Shown piece after piece: positions 3,866-46,531 of a stretch of DNA of 64,000 nucleotides. The notes beneath the pieces were generated by a model that did no database searches, was not told the DNA's origin, and worked only from the letters and a program-made list of their open reading frames with translations. Source of the DNA: Octopus sinensis (Eukaryota); contig NC_043001.1 of the NCBI RefSeq assembly GCF_006345805.1, forward strand, positions 117,428,001 through 117,492,000, given 5' to 3'. A program made the position numbers and the translations under genes. Position 1 is the first letter of the stretch, and the number at the start of each line of letters is the position of its first letter.

Positions 3866-4272
3866 TACTCTTTTTTACTCTTTTACTTGTTTCAGTCAAC
3901 ATGACTGTGGCCATGCTGGAGCACCGCCTTTTAGTCGATCAAATCGACCCCAGAACTTATTCTTTGTAAGCCTAGTACTTACTTTATCTGTCTCTTTTTT
4001 TGCCGAATCGCTAAGTTACGGGGACGTAAACCCACCAGCATCGGTTGTCAAGCGATGTTGGGGGGACAAACACAGACACACAAACACATACATATATATA
4101 TACATATACATATATACGACGGGCTTCTTTCAGTTTCCGTCTACCAAATCCACTCGCAAACCTTTGTTCGGTCCAAGGGTATAGTAGAAGACACTTACCC
4201 AAGGTGCCACGCAGTGGGACTGAACCCGGAACCATGTGGTTCGTAAGCAAGCTACTTACCACACAGCCACTC
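3866..4272 (-). mobile_element. tRNA-derived SINE, long family B (~410 bp)
   Basis: Reverse complement of the copies at 14882 and 25126: gagtggctgtgtggtaagtagcttgc head, ccttgggcaagtg-type core, internal TA/TG tract, and gactgaaacaagtaaaagagta tail. Confidence 0.85.
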
Positions 4273-4402
4273 ATATACATTAATCTTGGGAATGCAACAA
4301 AATCAGAATCTGGTAACTACTTCATGGTCCACGGAAGTTCACGTGATTGTTCTTGCTTTACTCATGTTGGCTGTCCCGTTCACGAATTTTTTTTCCCACG
4401 AG

Positions 4403-4908
4403 AGTTCCGGATCCCAGTTATGAACTTATTTGCATACAGCCAATCAGAGCTCATCTATCAAACTAACTTATGAGCGCATATCGACTGATGGGCGATAAGA
4501 TAAAGCCACTTGGGTAAGGAATGACCATGCTTCTTTTCCCTTTTAAGAATGTTGTTCTTGTTCTTGTTCCAACCATGGCTGCCTCTGCGTAGTTATTTGT
4601 GTTGCTGTTTACTTTGTAAAACAGTAAGGAAGAGGGTTGCTAGTACATCACCCTCTACCTGTATTTTCTCCATCTACATCGTTACCATATGGGGCCCTAA
4701 CAAGATCCGATAATAGGTATAGATGCAAATCTACCTAATTACTTGTCTCCTTCTAAAAATCTAGCATAACTTGGCGATCGATCGACTTACAGCACTGTAC
4801 CTTCGTCTTGAGTTTACTTGGTACAGTGTGTTTGTTAACTTGGCAACAAGGTCAAGGTGAACTCTGATTGGCTGTATGCAAATGAGTTCATTACTGGGGT
4901 CCGGAACT
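4403..4908. repeat. ~505-bp element bounded by 47-bp inverted repeats, each carrying ATTTGCAT plus CCAAT
   Basis: 4403-4449 agttccggatcccagttatgaacttatttgcatacagccaatcagag versus the reverse complement of 4862-4908, with about 4 mismatches. Confidence 0.75.
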
Positions 4909-5235
4909 AAGAAGTGAATGCAGAGAGACTCAGTAGCTCACTCAGTGTCCGGCGTGACAATAGCTCACTTAGCAACATTGTAACTTTGAAAGTAAGTTGA
5001 TTTGTTTTTCTATCTCTCCTTTCCATTTTCATGAGATTGACAACAAATAACAGAATTAATGCTTCATAATTTTATGGACTAGCAGTGCTAATAAAATATT
5101 GGGAAACTCGTGAAAATGGCCAAATTGTGCTACTTCTGGCAATGCATGTATTTTCTGATTTTTATTTTTTACGTGGTGGTTGACTTGTGATGAGAACTGA
5201 GTTTGTATTTAAATCCGTCAATTTACGTGTGACTG

Positions 5236-5753
5236 GAGATGGCAGTAGTTCGCTTCTGCTCATAATATATATAAATTCGAGCGACTCACAGTCGCTGATT
5301 TTGCAGCAAGCTAAAAAGCTAGTTCTAAAATCTCTCTAAGAGATAATCGCAGTAATTGTGCTAGCAGGTAATGTTCGTAGCCACTTCAACATGGCTGTCT
5401 CGTTCGAACAGTCTTTACTGCGATTTTTAAACCCCAAGTGGACATCTCTTCTAGCTGGTTAACGATGCACATCTCCATCCGATATATTGCGAGCAAGGGA
5501 ACAAATCCCTACCACCTTCAAGCGACAGGACCAGCATACCAGCCTGGTTTCAGGCTATTTCTGCCTCCCTTCAGTACTGGACACCTCGCCTACTAGAGAT
5601 TGCAGTAGCTCGCCTCTGCTTGCAATATATATAAATTCAAGCGACACAGAGTCGCTGATTTTGTAACAAGCTAAAATGCTAATTCTAAAATCTCTTTAAG
5701 AGATGAGCAGAGACGAGCTGCAGCCATCTCTAACAGACGAGGTGTCCAGTACT
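5236..5753. repeat. 109-bp direct repeat (period 360) overlapping a 48-bp inverted repeat at the 5' junction of the R4-like LINE
   Basis: Direct repeat 5236-5344 / 5596-5704. Inverted repeat 5573-5620 / 5706-5753 (agtactggacacctcg…/…cgaggtgtccagtact). Confidence 0.75.
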
Positions 5754-5754
5754 T

Positions 5755-7543
5755 TAAAATATAAACTCAAGACGATGAGCGAGAAACTCCGCTACCGCAT
5801 GCGAATTTTTGAGCGAGCCAGTATCAATCGCAAGTTTGCTTCCAACCCACAAGCATTATACAGAGAGATGAGGAAGGAAAACATTACGATTAAGAAAGCT
5901 CCCTCTCAAGATCTACAATCATTCTGGTCAAAAAATTTGAAACGAAAAGAGTGATTTCACCCTGAATGCATTATGGTTAAATACAACTGAGAGAGAATTC
6001 TATGTCAACATTAACAATAAAATATACAAAATTGATGCAGAAACCTTAGCTAAAGCAGTAGGCAAACTGAAGAATAGGAAGGTACCTGGAAGGGACCTAA
6101 TAGTTGGAAACTGGTACAAGAAACTGACATTTTATAGAAACCAATTGATATGTATGTTCAAAAGGACTACGGAAGGTCAGACTGATATACTACATTGGCT
6201 TGCTACAGCATGGGCAAATCATGTTGCCAAGACGACAAAAAGGCTTATGCTAAAAGTATCAACAATGCCCCCAAACATCTGGAATTAATAACATCATTTT
6301 CATCTAATATAGGCATGGAATTTGGCCAAAAGAAATGTTCATATTTGTTATAGAACGAGGAAAGTTAGTCCCCCAAACCCAAACCTGTACATCAACGGTC
6401 CTCTGTCTCCCTCACACAAAGAATGTTACAAGTACCTAGGCATAAACGAAAATGTATAATATGAAGGCATTGTGTATAAAGATAGAGTGACCCGAGAATA
6501 TTACACCACCAGACTTAGGAAAATCTGGTATTCGGAACTCTTCCCTTACAACAAAACAACATCCCACAATGCATCTGTAATATCAGTGCTGATCCCAACA
6601 TTTGGGATACTTGATTGGTCTGTAGAGGAAATCCACTTCATAGCTATCAAAACCTGCAAAATCCTGACAACAACTGGGAACTTCCACAGAAACAGTGATG
6701 TTGACAGGCTCTACCTAAGAAGAAATGAAGGTGGTAGAGGCCTGAGATAAGTGCATACGGCCTTCGAATCTCGTATAGCATCACTCAGGCAGCGCTTGCT
6801 AAACAACAGCAGCAAAAATGAATATAAATGCAGTGCTGAAAAGTGGAGTGAGCAACATTGTACGAGTTGGCAGTGAGCTCCTCAAGATGCACTCTTCACC
6901 TGATGATCTATACAGCTCCACAACAGCTAGGCTGTCTTACCTCAGAGAAGGCCTGGATGAAAAGTATACAAAAAAAAGGCTATGCATAGGTATGTTGCCC
7001 GCAAGCTTGAAGAAAATAATAGAATTGACACGAAGCGCAGCCTCTATTAGACACAAGACCATTACATTACATCACATCACTTCTGTCAAATGCAAACATA
7101 ACAGACTGGATATTGTTGTTTGGGACAGAGGGGCAAAGATATGTACCATCATAGAGGTCAGCTTCCCTGCAGATATAAATATCTCTAGAAAAATCAAAGA
7201 AAAAGAGGATATCCATGGACAACTGCTTCGAAGCCTCCAGCTTCTATATCCAGACTAGGAATTCATATTCATACCAATAATAATTGGAGCACTAGGTTTT
7301 GTTAGTAAATGCTTAGAGGAGAATCAGGATAAACTGGGATTTCCAGGAAGAGAAATTGAACGGCTAATTCGTACATTACAAGTGCAATCTGTGAGTGGAA
7401 CAGTGAAAATATGCAAGACTTTTCTCAAGTTCCAAATCTGAATTTGTCAGTGTTAACTACATTTCAAAGATGGAGTCTTGAATCTTTATTGGAGACGGCT
7501 CCTTCCTCTCAGGAAGATTTATAGTAATTGAATAATAGACGAG
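5755..7543 (+). mobile_element. R4/Dong-clade (RLE) non-LTR retrotransposon, decayed copy 1
   Basis: KLRYRMRIFERASINRKFASNPQALYREM (pre-RT region), YKYLG and RLYLRRNEGGRGL (RT thumb), NRLDIVVWD…IIEVSFP…FIPIIIGALG (PD-(D/E)xK RLE). Stop at about 7440, ~100-bp 3' UTR, then (CATA)n. RT core and CCHC region are internally deleted. Confidence 0.88.
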
Positions 7544-7723
7544 ACATACATACATACATACATACATACATACATACATACATACATACATACATACATA
7601 CATACATACATACAGACATAATACATACATGCATACATACATACACACTCATACATACAGACATAATACATACACACATACATACATACATACACACATA
7701 CATACAGACATAATACATACATG

Positions 7724-7757
<34 letters not shown>

Positions 7758-7928
7758 TACATACAGACATAATACATACATGCATACATACATACAGACA
7801 TAATACATACATGCATACATACATACACACACATACATACAGACATAATACATACACACATACATACATACATACACACATACATACAGACATAATACAT
7901 ACATGCATACATGCATACATACATACAT

Positions 7929-7961
<33 letters not shown>

Positions 7962-8092
7962 TACATACAGACATAATACATACATGCATACATACATACA
8001 CACACATACATACAGACATAATACATACATGCATACATACATACACACATACATACATACATAAATACATACATACATACATACATACATAC
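7544..8092 (+). repeat. (CATA)n compound microsatellite with recurring cagacataat variant
   Basis: Direct inspection. Confidence 0.95.
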
Positions 8093-8147
8093 CCTGTTGT
8101 TGATGTTGAAATTCCTATGAAGGAGCCTTGGATCTAGGTTAGAAACC

Positions 8148-8179
<32 letters not shown>

Positions 8180-8213
8180 TGGTAAGAATTCTTTAAATAA
8201 AACTGAATAATGT
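8093..8213 (+). mobile_element. Short 5'-truncated 3'-UTR piece of an R4-like family
   Basis: ggagccttggatctaggttagaaacc…gaataat resembles the 3' UTRs at 7468-7537 and 48380-48430. Preceded by (CATA)n and followed by catgcatatatacatac. Confidence 0.55.
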
Positions 8214-9439
8214 CATGCATATATACATACACTTCAAAAACAAACAAACAAAATGTGTTTGTATATTTGCCTTTATGTCCATAGTCCTAATTTAAAATGA
8301 AAGAACTTTCATATTTGCAGTATGTACGACGGATACGGAAAATAATTTCTGTTGCGAAGAAAGACTTACTTTGCTGCTAACTTCTGAGGAATCAATCAAC
8401 AATCACAATTCCTCCCTATAGACACCATCACTGAATTAACATCTTTGCAAAGCACCATCATTAGAGAAATATTTTCTGAAATCCTCATGGTGGCTAAGAA
8501 AAATACAAACTTTATCGTGTTGCAGTTGACTCCAAGCTGTTAAGCATGGATCTAAAACTTCAGCCAGTCTCTTAGTTTCAAATCATGTACTAGGTTATTC
8601 AGATATTCTTGTGATATTAAATGTGGTTCATTGGAGAAACAGGTAGCCTGTAATGTAGGATTAGATATGTTTTTATCATATGTTCCAGCTTGGTTTGATT
8701 CCTCATCTCTTAAACTAAAATGCTTCTTCTTAAGATTTGGCCACTCTGGGGAACTTATCTCATTGCAGGCAATAGATTATTGTTTTTAATTAAGCTCTTT
8801 GTTTTTGAAGTGGTTCCTTTTGCGTTCACAAGGTAGAAACAAAACTCTGAAACCGTTTGGCTATACCGTTTGTAGTTATGACACATGTCAAATAACAAAT
8901 ATGTGTGGTCGTTTAAATCCAAAATAAAGTCCATAGCTTGTTTTAAATAATGGTGTAAAGTTAGATTTCTGAGATTTTTAAAGTTGGATCCTCACATAAA
9001 TAGAAGGAATTAAAATGATTCACAGTTCCACAGTGTCACAAAAAACACAACACTGGTTTAAATCAACACACACTACTTGTTAACACTGACATTTGCAAGG
9101 AGATTGACTCGCAGTTGCTCTACACACAGGCTCTTGACTCATATCCGAACAGGTCAAAACATGAATAGTCTGCTGTCTTGACCGAATTTATCCTGCCAGT
9201 ATTATCATACTGGAAAAAGGGAGTAGATCGTTCGTCGCTGTTGCGAATAGTCCCTTTGTTGACTAAAAATCCCGCGCTCGCAATTAAGGGAGTATTTAAT
9301 TAAATTAGCGACCTATGTGTCATACTTGATGAATACACGCAGTCGATAGGCCAGCTACTGTATTGCTAGTTTTGAAGAAAAAACATCTCTTATGGACTAG
9401 CTATGTTTAAAAACAATAATTATGAGAGAGAGAGAGAGA

Positions 9440-9625
9440 GAGAGGGAGAGAGGCTGTTCGCAACATCAGTGAATCCACTGTTCTCTATATCAGAGTCGAT
9501 GAATTCTCATCAGAGCATTAACTAGCTGTGAGTATCAGCTAATGAAAAGGTCAAAAAATGCTGAAATGTGTCTGGCGCTCTCGCTGGCCGCAGCCGGGAC
9601 GAATTTTCCTCTCTCTCTCTCTGAA
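9440..9625 (+). repeat. Dispersed repeat of unknown class; second copy at about 43800-43970
   Basis: Shared ttcgcaacatcagtg…ctatatcagag.cga.gaattctc…gctgaaat.t.tctggc…gacgaattttc. Confidence 0.6.
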
Positions 9626-10339
9626 ATTTATTGTGTTTTTAAGTGGTAATAACCTCTCACAAATGGTGTTTGTAGGTAAGGTTGCATCTAAATGATGTAA
9701 CAACACCATGTGAACATGTAAATAATAATAGCTTTCATTTCACCGCACAAATAAGTTTCAGGTTGGTCATGAATTAGAAAGTTACCACAAGTTAATACAA
9801 GTGAAGGAATAATCCTGTAGCGTTTATAAAAAGTTGATTACAAATGCTTTGTACTGAAGCTTGCCAAAACAGGAAAAGTTACACATGTTAAATTCAGTGC
9901 GGCCAACTATAACGACATATTCAGGTTGAATAAAAGTCGTGAAAATAACTATTGCAAACGGTAGGAGAGTATGGAGAGCTGGACTGCGGGTTGTCACACA
10001 CGGAAGGTTGGCGATAAAAACAAGCCTTTACATAACTCTTGAATCGAAACAGTCCAGTATAATTTAGAATGATCTGTCACGTGAAGTCTGGCTTCTGATT
10101 GGCCAATAATCCGGCCTCTCACACGAACAAAGTGTTGCTATGTTGTGATTTGAACTTCCTAATCCGACGACTTGGTTTCGAGTCTTGCAGCAATCTGAAG
10201 GCAAACACTGCAGTAACTAATGTGTGTGTGTGTGTGTGTGTGTGTGTGACAAAGGCTTCAATGACAGAAGAAGGATTTGAAGCCATAGTAACTCAGTTCG
10301 TGTATGTTCACGGGAGTTGTGTGAAGCAGTCGAATTTTT

Positions 10340-10452
10340 CCAGCCAAGCAAGAATTTGACTTTGTCACATTTTACTGTTTCTCTTGCATCTCTGTCCCTT
10401 TTGTGCATCAGGTATTTGGTTGATATTTCCAGTTCCTGGATTGCAAACGCAT
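10340..10452 (-). mobile_element. R4-like LINE fragment abutting the (TATG)n array
   Basis: Minus frame AFAIQELEISTKYLMHKRD matches YAFAIQEQEIATKYLVNKRD of copy 2 (47665-47725). Confidence 0.75.
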
Positions 10453-11208
10453 GTATGTCTGTATGTATGTATGTATGTATGTATGTATGTGTGTGTGTAT
10501 GTATGTATGTATGTATGTATGTATGTATGTATGTATGTATGTATGTATGTATGTGTGTGTGTATGTATGTATGTATGTATGTATGTATGTATGTATGTAT
10601 GTATGTATGTATGTATGTATGTATGTATGTATGTATGTATGTATGTGTGGTATGTATGTATGTATGTATGTATGTATGTATGTATGTATGTATGTATGCA
10701 TGCATGTATGTATGTGTGTGTATGTATGTATGTATGCATGTGTGTGTGTATGTGTGTATGTATGTATGCATGCATGTATGTATGTATGATGTATGTATGT
10801 ATGTATGTATGTGTGTGTGTGTATGTATGTATGTATGTATGTATGTATGTATGTATGTATGATGTATGTATGTGTGTATGTATGTATGTATGTATGTATG
10901 TATGTGTATGTATGTATGTATTTATGTTGTATGTATGTATGTATGTAGTATGTATGTATGTATGTGTGGTATGTATGTATGTATGTATGTATGTATGTAT
11001 GTATGTATGTATGTATGCATGCATGTATGTATGTGTGTGTATGTATGTATGTATGCATGTGTGTGTGTATGTGTGTATGTATGTATGTATGCATGCATGC
11101 ATGTATGATGTATGTATGTATGTATGTATGTGTGTGTATGTATGTATGTATGTATGTATGTATGTATGTGTGTATGTATGTATGTAAGTGTATGTATGTA
11201 TGTATGTA

Positions 11209-11239
<31 letters not shown>

Positions 11240-11444
11240 ATGTATGTATGTGTGTGTGTGTATGTATGCATGCATGTATGTATGTGTGTGTATGTATGTA
11301 TGTATGCATGTGTGTGTGTATGTATGTATGTATGTATGTATGCATGCATGTATGTATGTATGTATGTATGTGTGTATGTATGTATGTATGTATGTATGTA
11401 TGTATGTATGTATGTATGTATGTGTGTGTGTATGTATGTATGTA

Positions 11445-11475
<31 letters not shown>

Positions 11476-11519
11476 GTGTGTATGTGTGTATGTATATATG
11501 TATGTATGTATGTGGTGTG

Positions 11520-11550
<31 letters not shown>

Positions 11551-11830
11551 GTATGTATGTATGGTATGTATGTATGTGTGTATGTATGTATGTATGTGTG
11601 TGTGTGTATGTATGTATGTGTGTATGTATGTGTGTGTGTGTGTATGTATGCATGCATGTATGTATGTATGTTGTGTGTATGTATGTATGTATGTATGTGG
11701 TGTGTATGTATGTATGTATGTATGTATGCATGCATGTATGTATGTATGTATGTATGTGTGTGTGTATGTATGTATGTATGTATGTATGTATGTATGTATG
11801 TATGTATGTGTGTGTGTATGTATGTATGTA

Positions 11831-11861
<31 letters not shown>

Positions 11862-11930
11862 GTGTGTATGTGTGTATGTATATATGTATGTATGTATGTG
11901 GGTGTGTATATATGTATGTATGTATATATA
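10452..11930 (+). repeat. ~1.5-kb (TATG)n/(TG)n microsatellite array
   Basis: Direct inspection; source of the HTYI/MYVC pseudo-ORFs. Confidence 0.95.
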
Positions 11931-11931
11931 T

Positions 11932-11965
11932 ACTAGCTGTTGGACCCGGCGTTGCTCGTGTTTTC
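11932..11965 (-). mobile_element. Helitron 3' terminus remnant
   Basis: actagctgttggacccggcgttgctcg = reverse complement of hairpin plus CTAG end; similar ends at 29321, 33483, 56048. Confidence 0.5.
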
Positions 11966-12104
11966 CATGTTGAAGTTAAGTCCACCTCTGACCTTGTATT
12001 GAAATCTTCTACTTACCCCGTGCCAACTATTATTCATTAAGATGTTATATCTGGATCGGCAGTGATTAACGCTTTCGACATACTCCTACATAGTGATTGA
12101 CCTT

Positions 12105-12851
12105 GGGCACTGCTGCACATGCGTGCTAAGTTTTAAAGTTGTAGCTTACTTCCGTTGTTTACAGCAGTACTTGGAAAGAATGTGTGTCGTGTGTGATCTT
12201 CGCATCGACCATGACAGAGAATGTTGAGCAGAGAATCTGCATCAAATTTTGCCAAAAGCTTGGCGATATCTGCTCAGAAGCCAACGCAAATGTTTCAAAA
12301 AGTTTTCACCGTTTTCGATACAATCAAGGAGATCTTATGCAACTAAAACCCGAAAGCAGCTTTGGCACAAACTTGCCAGACGTGTGTCTTATACCCAAAT
12401 CTTCAGTGATAATGGACTGAACTGAACCGTAACTAATCTGCACATCCTCTGATAAGTCACGGATGGTGATTCGTCGATTTCTCCTCACAGCTGCACGCAC
12501 ATCTGCGATGTTTTTCCCAGTTCTGCTGGTTGCGGGTCTCTCCAGAAGGTTCATCAATATCGACATTTTTCGGCCATCTTGAACCACTCATACACTTGTG
12601 TGTGGCTCATACACTCCTCTCCATACACTTTCTGCAATTTTGCGTATGTCTCTGAGCAGGTATCACTATGACAACTTTCTCTGACATGGTCAATGTGACG
12701 ATCACACGCTACACACCTTCCTTCCAAACACTGCTGTAAGCGGCGGAAGTGAGCTAGAATAATAAAACTTAGCGTGCCTGCACAGCAGAATTCTACATGT
12801 TTTAACTTCGCTACTATGGCAACATTCCGGATACTTATTAATCAAACCTCA
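12105..12851. mobile_element. Two opposed mariner 5' fragments (transposase N-termini)
   Basis: Plus frame MTENVEQRICIKFCQKLG (12211 on). Minus frame RPATSRTGKNIADVRAAVRRNRRITIRDLSEDVQISYGSVQSIITEDLG…FVPKLL. TIR-like end …gatacttattaatcaaacctca followed by TA at about 12851. Confidence 0.75.
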
Positions 12852-13545
12852 TATATATATATATAAATATATTGCAAATTCCCTAACCCTAATATATTTC
12901 TGACGTTCAAAACAAACGTCAGTAGACCTTTGCGAAAGGGTGTATAAGTCTAAGAGGTAGAGTTTTAAAAATCCACGCTAAATATATAACTGTCTTAGCT
13001 TCTACAATTTCCACAACTTAAGAAAAGGCAATTATTTAAGCCATGAAGAAATTTCCAAACATAGACTTGTTGCTTAGAAGTTCAATGCGAATAAAGTCAG
13101 ACTACTACTTCTAAATATGTATTTTTTGTATGTGGAGGTGAATTATCGGTTGTGTGACCTTTTATGATAATGCATGATTTAGAAACTAAATAAATATATG
13201 TCGATAGAGGTATTTAAAAATGTTATGAAACTTATTTAAAAAAACAGTCCAATACCTCAAAAGATAAAGATAAAATGCAAGTTGCTTCTTAGAAACGATG
13301 TAGCTTATCATGATTTCACACAAATCGACCAGATAGTTCAAGATTGGCAAAAGTGAAGTCCATGGCTGATGTAGTCTGATAGCCGTGAATGTGAGATATT
13401 GTCCCAATTTTACTATTTTTATCTTATCAACTTGCTGGTGATTTCTCTGAATGTTTAATTTTGTTCAAGCTAAAAGTTTTACTTACACTTTAGATTTCCG
13501 ATAAAACGTATTTCTACAAGCTTTATTTCATTATATACGTTAACT

Positions 13546-14504
13546 ATGTACATCACACTATCTCCCAGTGAGATCCGCTATACTCAAGATTCTATTGCTT
13601 CATGCTTCCAGAATGGAAACGATATAGAAGATCTTATTTTAGATATTATCAATGGTCAAACCACACCTGACAAAATTCGAACAATCAGAGTTTTCTTTAA
13701 GGATGGAAAATATTATAGTGAGGACAATAGGAGACTTTACGTATTGAAAACAGTGCAAGAGTTAAGTGAACCATACTTGATGGTTACGGTTAAATTAACT
13801 TCATATTTTGATTTTGAAGAAAATAAGTTCACTACTACGAATGACGGTTTAAGAATAAGAGTAAGAAGAAATAGGAATGATGCGAAGAAACCAAGGAATG
13901 TGAAACGCCCTCTATCTGAATCAAATTCTACAAATAAAGTACCTACTTATGAAGACTTTCCGAGCCTTACCTCTGAGGTCCTACGAAAACTACATATGCA
14001 AGTCCCAGAACTACCCCTGTAAAAGCTGCTAAAACTAAAATAACTTATGAAGACTTTCCGAGCCTTACCTCTGGAGGTCCTACGAAAACTACATATGCAA
14101 GTCCCAGAACTACCCCTGTAAAAGCTGCTAAAACTAAAATAACTTATGAAGACTTTCCGAGCCTTACCTCTGGAGGTCCTACGAAAACTACATATGCAAG
14201 TCCCAGAACTACCCCCGTAAAAGCTGCTAAAACTGAATGTAAAAGAAGTGCCGGAACTACAGATAAAACACTTATTTGTCATAGCGATATATTACCTTCA
14301 TCATGGAGCCTTACAACCGATGACGCTTCAAGTGCTACGAATGTTCCACCTTCAATTTGCATAACGCCGAGGCCAAGTGCTACGAATGTTCCACCTTCAA
14401 TTTGCATAACGCCGAGGCCAAGTGCTACGAATGTTCCACCTTCAATTTGCATAAAGTCGAAACCAAGTCGTCTAGAGAAACTATCTTGTTGTGTAATTCT
14501 TTAA
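13546..14504 (+). CDS. Uncharacterised ParB/Sulfiredoxin-like (DNRRL) domain protein with internal repeats and C-terminal CaaX (CCVIL); apparent 1-bp deletion at about 13975
   Basis: LSPSEIRYTQDSI…FQNG…IRVFFKDGKYYSEDNRRLYVLK N-terminal domain. The 99-bp repeat copies 2 and 3 read tctggaggt but copy 1 reads tctgaggt. Hand translation in the shifted frame is stop-free to TAA at 14502-14504 and ends RLEKLSCCVIL (~319 aa if restored). Confidence 0.75.
13945..14234 (+). repeat. 3 x 99-bp coding tandem repeat (TYEDFPSLTSGGPTKTTYASPRTTPVKAAKTKI)
   Basis: Units start at 13945, 14043 and 14142; the first unit is 98 bp. Confidence 0.92.
14331..14465 (+). repeat. 3 x 45-bp coding tandem repeat (SATNVPPSICITPRP)
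   Basis: Units start at 14331, 14376 and 14421. Confidence 0.92.
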
Positions 14505-14807
14505 ACAGTTACTCTGATGCTACTAACAAAAATCAATATCACTTTTAATTTTGTTAAATTCTGCCTGTTTTACGTTAGGCGAAAATGGAACTTACATTTA
14601 AATCTTCTACAATTTAATTTTTGTGAAATCCCTTCATATTTTTACGGATAATATCTGTAGATAAACTTAAAACTATCTGAAACAAAGGAAAAGGAGGTAA
14701 GTACAGAATCTGTTGTTACACCAAATGTTTGATAAAACTCGTTACAGTGTACAAAAGTAATTGAGGATTTTTTTTGTTTTTTGAAAAAGAAAAAAAGTGA
14801 GAGAATG

Positions 14808-14838
<31 letters not shown>

Positions 14839-14881
14839 AACAAAGAGAAGCGGGGAACGAGATTATGATTTTCATTAACAA

Positions 14882-15052
14882 GGCGCAAGAGTGGCTGTGT
14901 GGTAAGTAGCTTGCTTACCAACCACATGGTTCCGGGTTCAGTCCCACTGCGTGGCATCTTGGGCAAGTGTCTTCTACTATGGCCTCGGGCCGACCAAAGC
15001 CTTGTGAGTGGATTTGGTAGACGGAAACTGAAAGAAGCCTGTCGTATATATG

Positions 15053-15085
<33 letters not shown>

Positions 15086-15290
15086 TTGTGTGTCTGTGTT
15101 TGTCCCCCTAGCATTTCTTGACAACCGATGCTGGTGTGTTTACGTCCCCGTCACTTAGCGGTTCGGCAAAAGAGACGATAGAATAAGTACTGGGCTTATA
15201 CGTCCTGGGGTCGAGTTGCTCGACTAAAGGTGGTGCTCCAGCATGGCCGCAGTCAAATGACTGAAACAAGTAAAAGAATAAAGAGTAAGG
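14882..15290 (+). mobile_element. tRNA-SINE family B, near full length
   Basis: ggcgcaagagtggctgtgtggtaagtagc head through gactgaaacaagtaaaagaata tail. Confidence 0.88.
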
Positions 15291-15474
15291 TAATCTGGCC
15301 ATTTTAAATACTTTGCAGGTAAATTCGACCAAGAGAATTAAAAGCGAAATTAATCAGAGAACAAAGTTCACCCGTTAATGCCTGAATTTGTTTCCTTCCC
15401 TTTAAGATTTTCATACTAGGCCGAAAGTTGAGATTATAGTGTTGCCAATATTTAAAAAAAAAAATGTAAGTTAT

Positions 15475-15592
15475 TAAGAATCTTGCTTCCCAACAACCTG
15501 ATTCCGGGCTCAGTCTCACTGCGTGGTATTTTGAGCAAGTGTGTCTTCTACTATACCCTTGGACCGAACAAAGGCTTGCGAGTGGATTTGGT

Positions 15593-15636
<44 letters not shown>

Positions 15637-15812
15637 ACACATGTATATATTTGTGTGTTTGTTATGCTCTCCCCCCACCATCACTTGACAACCGATGTTG
15701 GTGTATCTATGTCCCCCGTAACTTAGCGGTTCGGTAAGAGAGAGCGATAGAATAAGTACTCGCACGGCTGCAGTCAAATGACAGAAAGAAGTAAATGAAA
15801 GAATAAAAGAAT
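15475..15812 (+). mobile_element. tRNA-SINE family B, older degenerate copy
   Basis: Recognisable ccgggctcagtctcactgcgtgg, acaaccgatgttggtg, cttagcggttcgg and gcagtcaaatgac blocks. Confidence 0.7.
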
Positions 15813-16788
15813 ATCTCTATAATTGCAATTGTTGCTGAAATATTAACAATTACTGTTGTGGTTCTCTTAGAAAAAGGACCGCGACTGCCAATGGGTCACT
15901 ATGTTCTGTACGTGTACTAAAACGTCGCACAAATTGAAAATTTGTCAAACTTGAGAACATATTTTTCTCTCTATCTCTCTCTCTTACTCTCTATCTCTCT
16001 TTCTCTTTCTCTTTCTCTCTCTCTCTCTCTCTGCACATACACACACACATGTGTGGATATGTTTAAAAAATTGACAATTATTATTATTATTTTTTAAAAA
16101 TTAATTTCTAGCTTCATATTCTTTCGCCGAAAGGGCATCGTTTTATATACAACTGAAAAAAAATATATCTGCATATTCGAGTGTGAAACAAAAATATCTA
16201 CATAATCATGATTTGGCAATCTTCTCATACAACACGAGTGTTTCCAGTGACCAATATTTGATGGAGAGACTTTCTCATTTGATGTCTGAATTTGTCTCTT
16301 TCTCATTTGATGTCTGAATTTGTCTCTTTCTCATTTGGTTTGGCCTAATACAAATAAACTGGATTGTGAAATCAACGCACGGTATTTTTTCCACGTTCTA
16401 TTATATTAACCTAATTTTATTTGTTATTCAATTTCCAGCAGTTTATAACTTGCAGATATAAACAGTAGTAAGAAAAAGTTGGCTGCTGGCTAACTAAAAT
16501 AATGGTGGTTTTGCGGGATTTAGAGGGAGAGTAGTCACTTAACCCGCTAGAAGTACATTACCGGCTAGGAGTAGGACATTGAATTATGTAGTACAAAACT
16601 TACATATAAGAAAGACGAGATGACTATGGTTGGATTGACTTTGGATACAAATATGTTTAGCCTAAACTGATCTGGAGATAAATAACATCAAAGTTGTTTT
16701 CTACGTTAAGATCGGGATCCTAATAATGAATGGAAAATGGAATATACATAATACAAACTTGCATATATATATATATGTCTGTGTGTGT

Positions 16789-16839
<51 letters not shown>

Positions 16840-16876
16840 TGTTCCCTCTGTGTTTAGCCCCTTATGGGTAGTAAAG

Positions 16877-16910
<34 letters not shown>

Positions 16911-16978
16911 ATAGAAATGGTAAGAGAACATAACAATGAAAGAGGCCTCGATATTATGTAAATAGAGGAATTTATCTG

Positions 16979-17014
<36 letters not shown>

Positions 17015-17597
17015 TGTATATACAAAATATATACATGGTATACAGGCATCCATAAGTGCAAGTGCACTTGCATACCTATATGCATACTAACATATACACT
17101 GTATGGCGGGTAATCTTACGGTATTAGTAGATGATGTCATTCACCCATGCAACGTTCCCGCATGACATAGATGAAAAGGCTAGACTGAAAAATTAATTTA
17201 ATGGCGTCGTCTGCTCATACGGAAAGATTTAAAACTTAGCTGGGAATAACTATGCCGTGAGGTAGAAAGAAGATTAGTGATGAAGTAATGTAGGTTCGAT
17301 CTTATTTCGTTACTTTCGTAACCTTATCATCGCACTTACTGAAGTACTAATGGCTGAATCACTAAACATATATTTACAAGTTTGTACGAACTGTAGCGAA
17401 GAAACACAGAATTATATAAAGAATAAACCGACTCGGATAAGCCAACCGTATAAAAAGCAATAGTTAAGTTAATGTTAAATCTAATGCAGAGAATATTTAA
17501 AACTCAACTACTTATATATAAATATATATATATAAATATATAAATATATATAAATATATATATAAATATATATATATATATAAATATATATAATATA

Positions 17598-17647
<50 letters not shown>

Positions 17648-17660
17648 ATATTATATATAT

Positions 17661-17712
<52 letters not shown>

Positions 17713-17715
17713 ACA

Positions 17716-18049
17716 CAACAATTGCAGCGTGGAAGGTGTTTGTAAGCCATTTAAGAAACACACAAAAGCCGTTCGATTCACTTCAACATTTAAATTTAAT
17801 TTGTCAAAATATTTTCGTCGCTAAAATCTGCGACCTGTTCACTGACAAAAATCCGTGCTGCATCTCGGATGCAGCACGGATCTTTGTTAGTGACGAAAAT
17901 ATTTTGACAAATTAAACTTAAATGTTGAAGTGAATCGAACGGCTTTTGTGTGTTTCTTAAATGGCTTACAAACACCTTCCACGCTGCAATTGTTTTCGTT
18001 TCAGCACACGATCTCAGATAAAATTACTTGCTATGCGAGTACATCTCCG

Positions 18050-18050
<1 letters not shown>
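17716..18050. repeat. Foldback (palindromic) repeat, copy A
   Basis: acaattgcagcgtggaagg…gtgctgcatc / gatgcagcacgg…ccttccacgctgcaattgt; arms of ~130-150 bp centred at about 17866. Same family at 29820-30140. Confidence 0.9.
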
Positions 18051-18089
<39 letters not shown>

Positions 18090-18092
<3 letters not shown>

Positions 18093-18365
18093 AAAAAGAC
18101 AGAAAGAAGAATGCAGTCAGTGGTTAATGTTATTTTCAATTTGCTATCAGACATAACTCTACACGTTTTGGCCTTAATTTGACCTGATCAGTGGAGTAAT
18201 AGGCATGAATTAAAAGTGTCAACACGACCATAATTGTTGATAATGCTTTGTATGAGAATGGCGTCTCTGAATTGGTCTCAATGCAACATATGACGAGGTT
18301 AAATTTGAGAGCCACTCGCATCATCGGTTTTCTTGCCGCCAACTCGTTTCTTTTCCAGCGTTGGA
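18090..18365. repeat. Dispersed repeat of unknown class; second copy at about 24000-24250
   Basis: gtcagtggttaatgttattttcaatt…aggcatgaattaaaa…ggttaaatttga.a.ccactcgcatcat shared by both copies. Confidence 0.7.
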
Positions 18366-18832
18366 TTTAGGTAGGCCAGTGATGGTAGACACACAGACGC
18401 ACGCACGCACATTCACACACGCACGCACGCACGCACGCACATTCACACACACACGCACACACACACACACACACACACTTTATATATGTGTGTGTGTGTG
18501 TGTTCTTCTTCGCTTCCTCCTTCCTCGGCTACTACTGCTGCTTAAACAATCAAAACCAAGAACACATCAAATATTCTTTTAGGACTGCTACTACCTGCTA
18601 CCAAGCCTTCACAAGAGTAAAAAAGAGACAGACAGACAGACAGAAAAAAGGAAAATGTCCCTTGCATTTGAAAGCTATTGAATTATTTTAAAAGAACATT
18701 TCATTTAATTTTTCCACAATTTGTTTCTCATGCTTTACTCTAAGTTGAAAAAGTCGCAAAGTCTGAAACCGGTACTAAAATGTTCTTGATGATAAAATTA
18801 TTTTAGCATTTTCTACCTTCTTGTCTTATTTT

Positions 18833-18879
<47 letters not shown>

Positions 18880-19007
18880 ATTGAGGTAATCAGATCAGAT
18901 GGTTCATATTTGTAGATATTTATTTATATATTACATTTTTTACATATATATCATATCATATCATTCGGATTTCGGATTAGCGCTTGCTCCCATTCTAGTG
19001 GGCTTTT

Positions 19008-19042
<35 letters not shown>

Positions 19043-19823
19043 TATATATATATGTGTGTGTGTGTAATAATTAAAAATATATGCATACATACAAACATAT
19101 ATGTACGTACCTACATCTACATGTATATATACATGCATATATAAATAAATATACGTAAGTATAGGACGCCACAACAAGACGTAGAAACGGGAAAAACAAA
19201 AATTTAACGACAAGTACAGGACAGGCTACACAAGAAAAAATCCAAAAATTTTTTACAACAAGAAAACAAGTACAGGACAAGCTACACAAGGAAAATCCAC
19301 CGTCATCAGCTGTCGCTAGTTAACTCAGGCGTGTTTCGAAGGCAAGACATGACACTCGTTAACTAGGCCTTCCTGCGAGAGAATTAAAATAAAATTCCAA
19401 GCAGCGGGGTAAAACGGGTAAGAACACAAACAGGATGTGTATATATATATATATGATAATGAATAAATAAATGGGATAATTATCCCCTTATACGGCACAA
19501 CGCATTAGTGCTCTAATAGAACCTCAGGAATATCAAACCACGAAAGAGAGAACAAATTTCAAAGGTCAGTGTTCATATTCACTAAATATATTTCAAAGCA
19601 TCGGAATACTCCACAGCATACATAAATGCATTCATATACACTAGATATAAAAATTTAGTAATATATAAATATATGAATGTATAAATGTACCTGCGAGGTT
19701 GTATGTCCTATTCAAATCAATGAGGCTATTAACATATGCGGATGGTGAATGTATAACGGTAATCCAAACAGATGAGAAAGTTGGTATAAAAGGATTTTAA
19801 AAGGAATCTTGAGCAGGTGCAAA

Positions 19824-19910
19824 GTCTGACGGCCGTTTCGAGAAGATATAGGTTGGTATGGGCGAGTTAATTCCAACCATAACTATCAACTATTTTTCTC
19901 TCATCAGAGT
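19824..19910 (-). ncRNA. Type-I hammerhead ribozyme motif with long stem II (degenerate stem I)
   Basis: Minus strand: CTGATGA-GAGAA…TTCTC-GAAA-CGGCCG-TC; stem III ACGGCCGT is palindromic; GUC site. Confidence 0.5.
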
Positions 19911-20059
19911 TAACCTAAAAGATATATAAAAGAGTTATTTAAATCTTAAAGTTTTAAGCGACATGAGAAATTTAAGAATTTTTAAAAATCGATCGCGGTA
20001 TCGAAACATACTGTTCAGATTTTTTATTACCCTCCAGGGTAATAATTTTATCCTCCAAG

Positions 20060-20640
20060 CCGACGACTGTTGCTGCCACTAGCCAGGTACTTCGGTAACT
20101 CTTAGTTTCGACGTTCTTCTCCCCAAGTACGTGAGGAGAAGAACCACTTCTTCCGTCTTTAAAGTATTAGTCGAATACTGCACGGCTTTCTCTTCACTGT
20201 GGAATCTCATCTCAATGGCAGCAAACTTCTTCGCTCGTGTTATATAAATTATGTGAGACAAAATTGGTCTAAGACATTTTTCCACCGCCTCTCTCGACGC
20301 CAAGTCAAGTTTCTTATTTATTACGGTAAACGTGTTGTTGATGACCCTTGTGAGAGATTTCGCTTGGAGGAGCTATTTGAACTTCCAGCTCCTCCTTTTT
20401 TAGCATCCCCTTAGACTTCATTATTTCATTTAAATTGGTATTAAGATTTCTTTTAGTTATTCCTACTGCTGCAGCAAAATTAAGTTTTGTTGCAGTCGGA
20501 GACTGCACAGGTGTCACCGGAGACGTTACTAAGACTGGTATATCTACTGCTTCCTTATTTCCAGACTCAAATGAGTCGCTCATTTTTCAAAGGATTTGGG
20601 CTGATGCCCCACAAAATTACGGCTAAGCGCCGCGTACATT
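20060..20640 (-). pseudogene. LINE ORF1 (gag-like) N-terminal fragment
   Basis: KLNFAAAVG…; KTEEVVLLLTYLGRRTSKLRV is homologous to KTEELIRLPIYLGRRASSV in the next fragment. Confidence 0.55.
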
Positions 20641-21049
20641 TGGGCCAACGCTCTGCAGAAAAACAATGATTCACCCTTCAAATAAGGGGAAATTATAAGA
20701 AAAGAACTGCTACAAGTAGTTACACCAGTTTTTTTTCAACAACACGAAATGTAACAAGTTCGGTAACAGGTTCAATAATACACCAAGCAAACAGCAAAAA
20801 TTACAACCGAACTTCAGAATGATCGAAATGTCGGAACATACTGTTGAGGCGGAAGATATTAATGTTTTATTACTCACAAGCGGTCAGATAAAGAGGGGGA
20901 CAAGCAAAGACCAGTAGGAGAGTACAAAGTAGGGACACAAAAAACAAAAACGGGTGAGAGGATGAACGAAATAATTAAAATGAATAATGAAATTGAGTCG
21001 CTCCTCCCCACATCCGGGTGACTCAATTTATCTTTGTTTTACTTTTTGA

Positions 21050-22140
21050 AACCTTCAAAAATGTCTGTTTTAAAATCGTTTATGAGATCTTTGTAACTTA
21101 CCACCGTTGGCATACCCTCGCTGTCCATTCCTCTCTGCCAGTACATCACGTCGTTTCCATACTCCTTCAGTCCCACAGTGTGAATAGTGCCCTGTGAGCA
21201 CCTCCTGAAAACCTGTAGTGAACACTGATATACGTTTCGTCCAGCTATACACCCTTTTTCAAAGTTTGACCTTGTGTTGATTGCAGAGTACTATGCTCTT
21301 TTTATTTCACAGACTGAGGACTGGGAAATTTGGGGCTTCTGTATATTTGTAATCGTTTTGTTAATGTCAGGTAGGGGTAGGACGTAGTTTGGTGTCTTCA
21401 AGAAAAGGGTGGAACGAAGTAGTTTGGGTGGCAGTTGGGTAGGTGTGTACAGTGTGTACTTTTTCCTCCTTTTTCTGTTTCTTGTTGTCGTTTCACATTC
21501 GTCTCTGTGTTTCCTCCTTTTTCTGTGCTTCTGTTGCTCTTCGCCGTTGGTGGAGGTGCGGTTTTTTTTCAGACACTGGCGCTTCTCGGGGATTTTTGAG
21601 CAGCGGAGGGCATTCTACCCTAATGTGGCCTATTTGGCCATATTTGTAGCAGCGAGGAGTTCTTCTCTTCACTCTGGCCCTGAGCGTTATCTCATCTGCC
21701 ATAATTGTTTCCATTATTTCCTCGAGGTCTTCCGGGGCTGCCTGAACCGCCATATTCACGACCTGCCCCTGCCTATTTTAGTGGGCAGTGCTAGTGGCTT
21801 GGAGGACCGCTATTTTATCCTCCAAACCCAGCAGTATTGCTGCCACCAGCCAGTCTACATTAATTTCTGGTAATGTATTGTCTACCCATACACTGGAAGC
21901 ACGCCTTCCAAGGTATATGGGTAGACGAATTAGCTCCTCAGTTTTCAGGAAGGCGCAGTTTCCGAGAGTCGCCTGGCTGTGGCTTCGTCTCAGAGCCGCA
22001 CCTCCACCATTCCAAACTTTCTTTCTCCTACTGGCTAGGTGTGTAGTTTATGGCCAGATAGGTTTTAATCCCTTTTCGATTTGCCCATTTGTTATTGTCT
22101 CTATTCTCTGTGCATTCACCGAATACGTTCTGTAGCTGAT
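21050..22140 (-). pseudogene. LINE ORF1 fragment with degenerate zinc knuckle (L1/Tx1-like)
   Basis: RRTPRCYKYGQIGHIRVEC (CCHC knuckle with C>Y), preceded by the YLGRR region; stops present. Confidence 0.65.
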
Positions 22141-22181
22141 TATTCTTCTCTTTGCCTCTTGTAATACTTCTTAAAGAGGTG

Positions 22182-22413
22182 ATACCTATTTCTTTATTAC
22201 CCACAAGGGGCTAAACACAGAGGGGACAAACAAGGACAGACATAGGTATTAAGTCGATTACATCAACCCCAGTGCGTAACTGGTACTTGATTTATCGACC
22301 CCGAAAGGATGAAAGGCAAAGTCGACCTCGGCGGAATTTGAACTCACAACGTAACGAAGACGAAATACCGCTAAGCATTTCGCCCGGCGTGCTAACCTTT
22401 CTGCCAGCTCGCC
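22182..22413 (-). mobile_element. tRNA-SINE family A
   Basis: Reverse complement of the 1541 element, including the tail tttagccccttgtgggtaataaagaaataggtat. Confidence 0.85.
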
Positions 22414-23159
22414 GTTTCGTCATTCCCCTCCCTGCGAGGCATATACTCGTAGTTTTCTATCTCGTCCATATTGACTTCCTCATTGTGGCTTTTGGCCACA
22501 ACCGCATAATTCCTTCTTTGTCCATTTCATCAAGCGCTTGGAGTTACTCGTATTTGGACGAACTCAACGTTTCGTATTCCATCATCTTCTTTAGTGTGTT
22601 ACCCCCTTCAACTAAGGGGGGAACACGTCGACAAAAGTGCCGTAAGGAAACAAAAACAGGCGCTAAACAATGAAGCAACAATAATAATCACTTTTCAGTA
22701 AAACGTGACTAGCCTTTGGTATGTTCAGGTGGATAATATGATAAGAGCTAAAATTACATGTTTAAATCAATTATGAAGCCATAAATCATAGTGTTTTAAG
22801 GTGAATCCAAATAGATAAAGGTTAACAATGTTAAAATCATAAAAACTAATTGCTTTTGGAAAGAAAATTTTAAAGTTGATAAATATTTGTGTCTAGAAAG
22901 AATTATGACGTCCGAGATATTGTTAAGTACAGTTTTTTTTTGTCAGCACGGAGTCGCTTCTTTTGTGCATAATTTACAGTTTCTAGAGTCTGTATTGTAT
23001 GGTGTGGTTTCCGTTATAATAGACCAATCTAGACTGAATTCTTTATTGCGCATTTTTAATTTATTAATGTGGGTAACTAGTGCAGTTGAATTTTTTGTTT
23101 CTTGATTAATAATTGAGTACGATAATTTCTCTCCCCAGCAAAAATTCTCTTGACATTTC

Positions 23160-23210
<51 letters not shown>

Positions 23211-23590
23211 TCGTTCTATCTTTCTTTCTTTCTTTATTTGTTTATTCATTTATTTATTTATTTCACCGCTGTTTATTTCCCAAATTTTACAACCATTATT
23301 AATCCAATGAACTTCTGAACTTTCAACGTAAGACCAAGTTTTTATATTTAGGTCAAACCAATTTTCTACTGAAATTGTTAGTTTCCTTCCCACTAGTTTC
23401 AAAGTTATTCAAGATATGCAGTGACAGACGAGAGTAGTATATCGGAATTTAAGGACTGCTATAATACCGTGTTCGATATAATCCACTGCATTTCACCCTA
23501 ACAATTTCTGATATTTCTAGTTCCAGCCTTCAAATTTCTAAGTTTAAATAACGCTGAATCAACTGATTTTTCTTTAAAAGTAGATTTAAT

Positions 23591-24761
23591 GTAGATTTAT
23601 CCCGCTCGTGACATATCTTTCGCAATGACCACCCGTGTTACTTCCGTTCTGGCACTTATGGATTCTTCTCTCTTTTACTCATTACTTATAGTGTGTATAC
23701 CATCCGAGGTCCTATATTAACCATTGTATATGTTAGCGAGAGGGGAGCAGAGATAATATCCAAAGTATTTGCTGTTCCACCTTGATTAATGAACCTGATA
23801 TAATTGATGCTCATCTGAAATATTTGCAAAGTCCAGCGTAAAGTCTGGGAAAGGATAGAGAATAACCGAGATTATAAGAAAGTAAAATGCGTGGTTATGA
23901 AAAGTGAGGGCCTTCAGTTAGATCATTGAGGAAATGAAAGGCGGTTGAGTATTGACAGAAACGGTTTTGTGTTGAGTATTAACATAGAAATAAAAAGAGA
24001 GAAGGATGTAGTCAGTGGTTAATGTTATTTTCAATTTTCTATCAGTGACAACTCTACACATTTTGGCCTTAGTTTGACCTCATCAGTGGCGCGATAGGCA
24101 TGAATTAAAAATCTCAACACGACCTTAACTGTTGTATGAGGATGGCTTCGCTGAGTTAATTTCAATTCAAAATATAACTAGGTTAAATTTGAAAACCACT
24201 CGCATCATGTGGCCTTCTTGCCCCAACTCATTTCTCTTTGAGTGTTGGTTTTAAAACAGCAAATCTGCGGCTAGATCATTTTACTTTTATTTATGTAGTC
24301 TGAATGGAGGGGCTTCTATCCAGTGACGTTTTAAGACATGGGTACACTCTGCAGCTGCCCAGGGACCTTACCTGTCAATGGCCAAATTCGGATCTATCTA
24401 TGGCGAGCTTTACTGTCAACAAATAGATACTATTGGGCTCTGCATTAATTTGCCCAGGGGCGTATAATACTGTTAAGACGGCCCTGGCTGTACCCATAAC
24501 CACATCCAGCCCTCATGTTATACTGATATTATTAACATTCCTCTTGAACAGTTGCTGCTGAAGGGAAAGCATATGCGACAAAAGTGTTCCAGAAAGCCGA
24601 CGTTCTGTGAAGGAAGGATTAGGCGCAATGGTTAATGTAGGACCTGGGATGGTATACACACTATAAGTAATGAGTGAAAGAGAGAAGAATCCATAAGTGC
24701 CAGAACGGAAGTAACACGGGTGGTCATTGCGAAAGATATGTCACGAGCGGGATAAATCTAC
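23591..24761. mobile_element. ~1.17-kb element with 136-bp near-perfect terminal inverted repeats
   Basis: 23591-23726 versus the reverse complement of 24626-24761, about 3 mismatches. No coding capacity or TSD recognised. Confidence 0.75.
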
Positions 24762-46200: not shown

Positions 46201-46531
46201 ACATACATACATACACACACACATACATACATACATACATACATACATACATACATACACACATATATACATACATACATACATACATACATACATACAT
46301 ACATACATACACACACATACATACATACATACATACATACATACATACATACATACATACATACATACATACATGCATACATACATGCAATACATACATA
46401 CATACATACATAAATACATACATACATACATACATACGCACATACATACATACATACATACATAAATACATACATAATAAATACATACTACATACATACA
46501 TACATACATACTTACATACATACATACATAC

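Follow-up and report, generated by a model that had tools for sequence, protein, structure and literature searches.

The closest described relative of the gene considered here is Tox-ParBL1, a toxin domain for which Zhang et al. (2012) predicted a ParB fold, a conserved N-terminal Ser/Thr that classical ParB lacks, and a [NT][RT][RT] motif, mostly N-R-R, that corresponds to DGHHR in Tox-ParB (PMC3482391). The same study placed the family in RHS, FilH, and HINT contexts and recorded its presence in metazoa, chlorophytes, and other eukaryotes (PMC3482391); this single comparative-genomics paper is the only mention of the family that our literature search found. Here, we analyze LOC118763415 of Octopus sinensis, a real single-exon gene at positions 13546..14504 of a stretch of 64,000 nucleotides (nt) from contig NC_043001.1 (hereafter the window, whose numbering is used throughout). 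Its product joins a Tox-ParBL1-like head domain to a long repetitive tether that ends in a CaaX box, and its reading frame is broken by a gap of one base in the first copy of a tandem repeat. We are moderately confident that a real, tethered Tox-ParBL1-like gene carrying a probable assembly gap is the best overall explanation of this locus.

Reading frames and the one-base gap

Coordinates were mapped via GCA_006345805.1 (CM016863.1), where a locus of 20,959 bases corresponds to window positions 3546..24504 with zero mismatches. The two frame pieces of the gene were analyzed separately, and the intact genes of Octopus vulgaris served as the full-length reference.

As assembled, the first piece is an open reading frame (ORF) at 13546..14022 (+) that starts with ATG, encodes 158 amino acids, and ends in VPELPL followed by a stop. 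It opens with the coding sequence (CDS) of the head domain, amino acids 1-110 (13546..13875, +), which was delimited by AlphaFold2, Foldseek, and invariant residues as a domain of the ParB/sulfiredoxin (Srx) fold resembling Tox-ParBL1. A short basic linker, NDAKKPRNVKRPLSESNSTNKVPT (13876..13944, +), then leads from the domain to the repeats and is colinear with O. vulgaris. The repeats themselves begin with three copies of a 99-bp (33-amino-acid) unit, YEDFPSLTSGGPTKTTYASPRTTPVKAAKTKIT (13945..14240, +), recognized by alignment and by Tandem Repeats Finder, which reported 2.9 copies of the 99-bp unit at 13945..14234 with 98% matches as well as 3.1 copies of a 45-bp unit at 14329..14468. The copies of the longer unit lie on the forward strand at 13945..14042 (98 nt), 14043..14141 (99 nt), and 14142..14240. 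The sole lesion in the gene is at 13975, where copy 1 falls one base short of copies 2 and 3, and the same single-base gap is the only difference between copy 1 and copy 2. This frameshift truncates the 158-amino-acid ORF at a stop within copy 1, 20 nt short of the end of the copy. An earlier note on this DNA, made from the sequence alone, had been right about the ORF and about the missing base in the first copy, but it had placed the stop shortly after that copy and not inside it.

The second piece is a downstream frame of 175 codons plus a stop (13977..14504, +), and it contains the rest of the 33-amino-acid repeats, a unique stretch rich in serine and threonine, the shorter repeats, and the CaaX box. 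As the earlier note had described, translation in this shifted frame yields 33 amino acids three times and then 15 amino acids three times, and it closes with RLEKLSCCVIL and a stop. The three 45-bp (15-amino-acid) units, SATNVPPSICITPRP, occupy 14329..14468 (+) according to Tandem Repeats Finder, while C-CVIL and the stop (14487..14504, +) form a CaaX box ending in leucine with one extra cysteine just upstream, a candidate palmitoylation site.

The open downstream frame lies beyond chance because long frames are rare in the window and the protein is conserved in other species. The window is AT-rich, the mean length of its stop-free stretches is 20 codons, most of its stop-free frames of at least 175 codons are (ACAT)n microsatellites or retrotransposon fragments, and the downstream frame encodes almost the same sequence as the C-terminal parts of XP_036358906 and of O. 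vulgaris CAI9723622. It could nevertheless be argued that the frame is a chance product of non-coding tandem repeats, as repeat periods in multiples of three propagate an open frame free of cost; yet the unique, non-repeat parts are open as well, and they are conserved in other species as protein together with the CaaX box. A related argument would have the frame regained by ribosomal frameshifting or RNA editing, and cephalopods do edit their RNA heavily, but an A-to-I (adenosine-to-inosine) change is unable to restore a frame, and the existence of intact genes makes it unnecessary to invoke a slippery site or a stimulatory structure. We regard this whole group of explanations as scarcely credible, and frame rescue by RNA editing or programmed frameshifting was dropped as a candidate.

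Intact orthologs and paralogs

The structure of the gene is settled by its intact copies in O. vulgaris, the sister species, from which O. sinensis split ~2.5 million years ago (PMC10700109). Assembly GCA_951406725.2 holds two uninterrupted single-exon copies, 6.1 kb apart, with 96-99% DNA identity to the window. One encodes CAI9723622 (279 amino acids, with two 33-amino-acid and two 15-amino-acid repeats) and the other CAI9723621 (441 amino acids, with six and four, respectively). Both proteins end in KLSCCVIL, every repeat copy is read straight through, and all 8/8 copies of the 33-amino-acid repeat in the two genes have the full-length form. Each is thus a single uninterrupted ORF, and neither terminates at VPELPL, in keeping with the full-length gene that the earlier note had proposed. 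The number of 33-amino-acid repeats varies from one in O. bimaculoides through two and six in O. vulgaris to three here. A protein search with the 158-amino-acid ORF matched LOC118763415, A0A0L8HA22 of O. bimaculoides (235 amino acids), paralogs, and relatives in a bivalve and a dinoflagellate.

On the O. vulgaris sequence OX597818.1, a tandem segmental duplication of ~7.4 kb was found (locus L003, 7687-14143 versus 14827-21326) whose halves are 97-99% identical and each carry the gene, and the duplicated segment is present once in the O. sinensis assembly, at about 10322-17574 of the window. Either the duplication is specific to one lineage, or the O. sinensis assembly has collapsed two copies of the segment into this one.

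Two further intact, intronless paralogs stand in tandem 556 kb downstream in O. sinensis (CM016863.1, about 117,986,067-117,990,338). They occupy 2001..2648 and 5529..6272 of that locus (L004), encode 215 amino acids ending in WCVIL and 247 amino acids ending in CCVIL, and differ from each other in the number of 8-amino-acid SPRTTYEE repeats. The RefSeq entry LOC115211823 (230 amino acids) is a chimera of the two, as it begins in the 215-amino-acid paralog and finishes in the 247-amino-acid paralog. Two side observations were made on these genes: the pair is nested in a NUDIX_2 (CPSF5-like) gene of the other strand, and the motif (Y/E)x(A/E)SPRTT is common to the otherwise different repeats of both octopus paralog groups (13945..14240 in the window; the tails of the downstream paralogs). 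The latter may represent a conserved linear motif such as a site of proline-directed phosphorylation.

The annotated gene model

The earlier note had described the gene as hidden. This has to be softened, since NCBI already annotates LOC118763415 with a span of exactly 13546..14504, though through a distorted model that hops over the lesion. Both of its models, XP_036358906 (275 amino acids) and XP_036358907 (264 amino acids), leave out 13922..14052 (+), a stretch of 131 nt with the ends CA..AG that comprises 33 nt plus the entire defective 98-nt copy 1 and whose omission restores the frame. If the NCBI model were correct, these 131 nt would be an intron, spliced out to give the 275-amino-acid XP_036358906. 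RefSeq does carry the model in two isoforms, and A0A0L8HA22 of O. bimaculoides shows the same junction, in which LSE is joined directly to YFPS. The CA..AG ends are non-canonical, however, and the boundaries cannot be shifted to GT..AG; the skipped length equals exactly 33 nt plus the defective repeat copy; both O. vulgaris copies translate through the equivalent sequence; and every family gene examined here is intronless. The junction itself was seemingly taken from the O. bimaculoides protein, so that we infer for XP_036358906 and XP_036358907 a junction that follows protein alignment and not splicing. Overall, a genuine intron at this position is very unlikely.

A further argument, that LOC118763415 has no untranslated regions and hence no transcript support, was dropped, since the reported gene range is the CDS span. 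The frameshift itself is routine, a probable assembly or annotation fault that has led to distorted RefSeq models at both O. sinensis loci of the family.

Origin of the gap

We consider it fairly likely that the gap in copy 1 is an artefact of a PacBio-based assembly, either a consensus error that was left uncorrected or a side effect of two tandem gene copies having been collapsed into one. The PacBio basis of the O. sinensis assembly is taken from the statement in PMC10700109 that cites Li et al. (2020). An artefact is favored because the gap is the sole defect, copy 1 otherwise equals copy 2, no damage is seen in the remaining frame or in the CaaX box, and the assembly is PacBio-based. Identical tandem copies would be hard to polish, and a collapsed two-copy locus could yield a hybrid of this kind.

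The competing explanation is that the base loss is real, which would make the gene a young pseudogene or null allele, in the animal or in the species, with at most a 158-amino-acid protein consisting of the domain without tether and anchor. The deposited assembly carries the gap, tandem repeats are prone to slippage, and the family turns over fast, in that the repeat number can be one, two, three, or six and sister species differ in having one gene copy or two; moreover, other intact paralogs could cover the function. This explanation has to accommodate the absence of a second lesion in the 525 nt of the downstream frame, and it requires a very recent lesion, since nothing else sets copy 1 apart from copy 2. 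The likely difficulty of polishing identical tandem copies in a PacBio-based assembly also speaks against it, and we judge a real loss possible but distinctly less probable than the assembly artefact.

Fold and motifs of the head domain

AlphaFold2, run on amino acids 1-110 with an alignment of 10 sequences, returned a model with a predicted local distance difference test score (pLDDT) of 91.3 and a predicted template modeling score (pTM) of 0.84. When this model was compared with PDB structures by Foldseek, the top 26 matches were all of the ParB/Srx fold (Noc, ParB, plant and human Srx, SerK, SbnI, KorB, and Atu1540), with a best E-value of 2e-3, a probability of up to 1.0, and a template modeling (TM) score of about 0.5. 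This observation was further strengthened by the BFVD library of viral models, in which the best E-value was 4.8e-4 and entries named ParB/Sulfiredoxin, ParB-like, and Spo0J led the list; many BFVD entries are unnamed, and none indicates another fold. With ParB/Srx entries alone at the top of both libraries, the resemblance suggested in the earlier note is upheld, and the modeled structure supports a ParB/sulfiredoxin fold for amino acids 1-110. At the level of sequence, phmmer and hmmsearch against PDB sequences gave chance matches only.

The conserved residues of the domain are R11, Q14, S16, F21, D60-N61-R62-R63, T96, G101, and R107. The D60-N61-R62-R63 motif is invariant or nearly so, with N61-R62-R63 invariant or at least 90% conserved, and it lies at E55-58/H61-73 in the model. 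These residues bear on the alternative that the head is a plain sulfiredoxin or a canonical ParB-type DNA-binding CTPase and that the protein is accordingly a redox repair enzyme or a DNA clamp. The fold is indeed the same. Nevertheless, membership in Srx is excluded because the catalytic cysteine is missing, its position in GCHR being taken by the invariant Asn61, and membership in canonical ParB is excluded because neither a helix-turn-helix (HTH) nor a C-terminal dimerization domain was found after the head, where residues 95-275 have a pLDDT <50, almost no secondary structure, and no Pfam domain. The ParB family PF02195 gives no match, and the closest sequence relatives of the head are toxin cassettes. 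Taken together, these findings leave a plain Srx or ParB identity highly improbable.

Bacterial relatives and the candidate immunity gene

A tblastn search of plasmids revealed relatives over the whole domain in Haliovirga abyssi (46% identity, E 1e-9), Sinorhizobium chiapasense (35%), and Streptomyces, together with a match in Bacillus toyonensis that spans about half of the domain. In these bacterial relatives, the domain forms the C-terminal tip behind an RHS repeat or a PT-TG pre-toxin domain. A gene matching DUF7660 (83-84 amino acids; Pfam E 6e-28 to 4e-25), homologous between the loci, follows 0-70 nt after the toxin domain at 3/3 loci from unrelated bacteria, in each case directly 3' of the ParBL1-like domain (L006 5319..5570, L007 5312..5563, and L008 5326..5580). 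A search with the bacterial profile added 228 proteins from Streptomyces, Clostridia, Paenibacillaceae, Pseudomonas, and Microbulbifer, some of which carry PT-HINT and one of which is named filamentous haemagglutinin. With RHS, PT-TG, or PT-HINT upstream and DUF7660 downstream, this arrangement has the anatomy of a polymorphic toxin cassette with its immunity gene, and DUF7660 is a candidate immunity protein by gene position. No DUF7660 relative was found near the octopus loci. The earlier suggestion of a likeness to bacterial ParB-like toxin domains is thus substantiated, both by the 46% identity to the C-terminal domain of a polymorphic toxin and by the DUF7660 context.

S16 (within IRYTQDSI) and D60-N61-R62-R63 are invariant across the octopus, bivalve, dinoflagellate, and three bacterial sequences, and S16 is nearly invariant family-wide. 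On these features, the head domain fits a Tox-ParBL1-like assignment, the name being given from the published description. The position of the domain differs between the two groups, as it is C-terminal or makes up the whole protein in 118/119 bacterial members and is N-terminal with a tail in 172/246 members of eukaryote type. The signature after the motif differs likewise, NRRLEAF in bacteria versus NRRL[WY]V[FL] in eukaryotes. As a side observation, the octopus domain (13546..13875) is roughly as close to that of Haliovirga abyssi (L006 4983..5312; 46% identity) as it is to bivalve homologs (38-41%) and as the bacterial domains are to one another (38-49%).

Tether and predicted anchor across eukaryotes

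A profile search of 1.84 billion cluster representatives returned 4359 proteins at E<=1e-3 and 1761 at E<=1e-10. The named eukaryotic members come from cephalopods, many bivalves, a chiton, the tunicates Styela and Ciona, the dinoflagellates Amphidinium and Symbiodinium, and the green alga Ostreococcus, with many paralogs in molluscs, and in bivalves they often include runs of neighboring genes (Sinanodonta ACJMK2_034254-034258; Mactra ACF0H5_010400-010404). The idea of a cephalopod factor put forward in the earlier note is therefore too narrow. Among the first 157 family proteins, 25/157 contain two or three tandem copies of the domain.

The octopus product consists of the domain of ~110 amino acids, a tether of ~170 amino acids rich in serine, threonine, proline, and lysine that is made of very young and variable tandem repeats, and a C-terminal CCVIL. 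The low pLDDT noted above for residues 95 to 275 predicts disorder in the tail. While the tail diverges fast, C-V-I-L is invariant from the cephalopod paralogs to a bivalve. A CaaX terminus is present in 26/312 family proteins (CVIL in 13, CTIL in 4, CIIL in 3, and others), with leucine as the last residue in 21/26 and an extra cysteine within five residues in 22/26, often beside lysine or arginine. CVIL, CTIL, CIIL, or CAIL ends occur across cephalopods, bivalves, the chiton, and tunicates, so that the CaaX box is conserved across these groups. A CaaX box ending in leucine directs geranylgeranylation by geranylgeranyltransferase I (GGTase-I), and a nearby cysteine can be palmitoylated.

In other members, 13/157 of the first 157 family proteins, a C-terminal hydrophobic helix of the tail-anchor type replaces the CaaX box, and these proteins likewise consist of an N-terminal domain and a long tail. 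The occurrence of two different C-terminal anchors on the same domain-plus-tether plan argues that membrane tethering is a selected feature. A secreted or venom protein was rejected as a candidate, because the N-terminus is not hydrophobic and CaaX boxes are processed in the cytosol.

The earlier note had also not recognized the architecture as a described one, which proved half right: the domain family is known as Tox-ParBL1 and has been noted in metazoans, but the lipid-anchored architecture seems undescribed. The undescribed part seems to be the combination of an N-terminal domain, a disordered tether of variable repeats, and a CaaX box or membrane helix, which recurs in molluscs and tunicates. 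Two things are accordingly new here, the eukaryotic variant with a predicted lipid or tail anchor and, in bacteria, DUF7660 as a partner.

Proposed function and significance

These features suggest a mechanism in which the cysteine of CVIL would be geranylgeranylated by GGTase-I and the neighboring cysteine probably palmitoylated, and in which the head, given that no signal peptide is present, would hang at the cytosolic face of a membrane on its flexible tether. The D-N-R-R motif, which would occupy the site of the triphosphate-binding GERR of ParB and GCHR of Srx, may together with Q-D-S serve to bind a phosphate ester or nucleoside triphosphate, and the head, held at the membrane, may then catalyze phosphotransfer or hydrolysis. 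The gene would thereby encode a toxin domain that was taken over from bacteria, domesticated, and put to use as a membrane-tethered effector or switch. The tandem, copy-number-variable, and fast-changing intronless gene arrays of molluscs point to immunity or genetic conflict as its setting, a suggestion that we advance tentatively. The wider proposition, that molluscs, tunicates, and, with other anchors, some protists keep toxin-derived ParB/Srx-fold enzymes at the cytosolic faces of their membranes, attached by geranylgeranyl plus palmitoyl or by a tail-anchor helix on a repeat tether whose length changes quickly, as nucleotide-dependent effectors or switches in innate immunity or in selfish, toxin-type conflict, is more doubtful still.

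Several results weigh against the interpretation of the locus as a tethered, toxin-derived nucleotide-binding protein. The Foldseek E-values are modest (2e-3 to 0.3, with a TM score of about 0.5), and when hhalign was used to align the family profile with the single human Srx sequence, N61-R62-R63 fell on C99-H100-R101 with a probability of only 21.5%. Pfam gave no match for the window protein even at an E-value of 10 and none in 149 relatives, including to PF02195 (ParBc), and scans of the domain and the 149 relatives with NCBIfam and PADLOC returned no relevant family. Geranylgeranylation of the CVIL cysteine is a prediction from sequence, the immune or conflict role is a guess from gene-family dynamics, and no biochemical activity is reported in the literature for any family member. 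An exact look-up of the 158-amino-acid ORF in read-assembly collections showed it not to be on record. Past the stop, no AATAAA or ATTAAA was found within 700 nt (14505..15200), with only GATAAA variants from 14660.

If the wider proposition above is true, the lipid-anchored nucleotide-binding proteins would gain a new class that has no relation to the P-loop GTPases, and if the domain is active, it would be a clear example of a toxin domain that was gained by horizontal transfer and became a cellular factor bound to the membrane. The expansion of tandem arrays concerns molluscs, animals with innate immunity alone. Three things are linked by this family, namely, a bacterial toxin domain with DUF7660, the ParB/Srx nucleotide-binding fold, and a recurrent eukaryotic membrane-tethering architecture, and the octopus protein offers a convenient starting point for studying the biochemistry of the family at large, which has thousands of cluster representatives and no Pfam, NCBIfam, or PADLOC model. 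In our literature search, no mention was found of LOC118763415, LOC115211823, XP_036358906, A0A0L8HA22, or DUF7660, and no work was found that joins ParB-like with CaaX or prenylation.

Surroundings of the gene

Arrays of (ACAT)n/(TGTA)n with up to 612 copies occupy 10451..11929, 61613..63998, 7544..8092, 46201..46613, and 52319..52636 of the window and give rise to its blocks of extreme GC and AT skew and to most of its long stop-free frames. A remnant of a retrotransposon without long terminal repeats (non-LTR) at 58050..60643 (+) retains Exo_endo_phos_2 and RVT_1 in three broken frames, and a remnant of a Mos1/mariner-type transposase HTH lies at 12324..12727 (-), about 800 nt upstream of the gene. 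The upstream neighbor on the opposite strand, at about 2500..12000 (-), is STEAP-like (F420_oxidored, Ferric_reduct) by homology to the O. vulgaris annotation (L003 1..9766) and shows no evident functional link. A scan for sigma-70 promoters and terminators gave a chance-level result with a model that is irrelevant in a eukaryote.

Comparison with known systems

The likeness to Tox-ParBL1 comprises the predicted fold, the serine at S16, the N61-R62-R63 motif, and bacterial relatives that stand behind RHS, PT-TG, PT-HINT, and filamentous-haemagglutinin regions. The eukaryotic domain differs in being N-terminal, in having neither a secretion or pre-toxin module nor a DUF7660 neighbor, in the signature NRRL[WY]V[FL] in place of NRRLEAF, and in the disordered tether and predicted lipid or membrane anchor that eukaryotic members carry.

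Srx and the archaeal/bacterial serine kinases SerK and SbnI are likewise single ParB/Srx-fold domains, which bind ATP and not DNA, and the GCHR motif, with which the helix following the beta-hairpin begins, may line up with DNRR. The octopus domain, however, has no catalytic cysteine, its similarity to these proteins is invisible to HMMER, and its partners differ, whereas Srx, SerK, and SbnI have no membrane anchor. The ParB, Noc, and KorB clamps share with it an N-terminal nucleotide-binding fold in which GERR may correspond to DNRR, and Noc acts at the membrane as well. Unlike these clamps, the octopus protein has no HTH, no C-terminal dimerization domain, and no parS/ParA context, and membrane binding by Noc depends on an amphipathic helix at the N-terminus and not on a C-terminal lipid.

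The closest parallel for the architecture is found among the CaaX proteins RhoB, Ral, H-/N-Ras, and G-gamma, which share the Cys-aliphatic-aliphatic-Leu terminus, the extra upstream cysteine that is often near basic residues, and the plan of a folded nucleotide-binding head on a flexible tail. In the octopus protein, the head is of the ParB/Srx fold instead of a P-loop GTPase, and it sits on a tail that is ten times as long and consists of tandem repeats in variable number.

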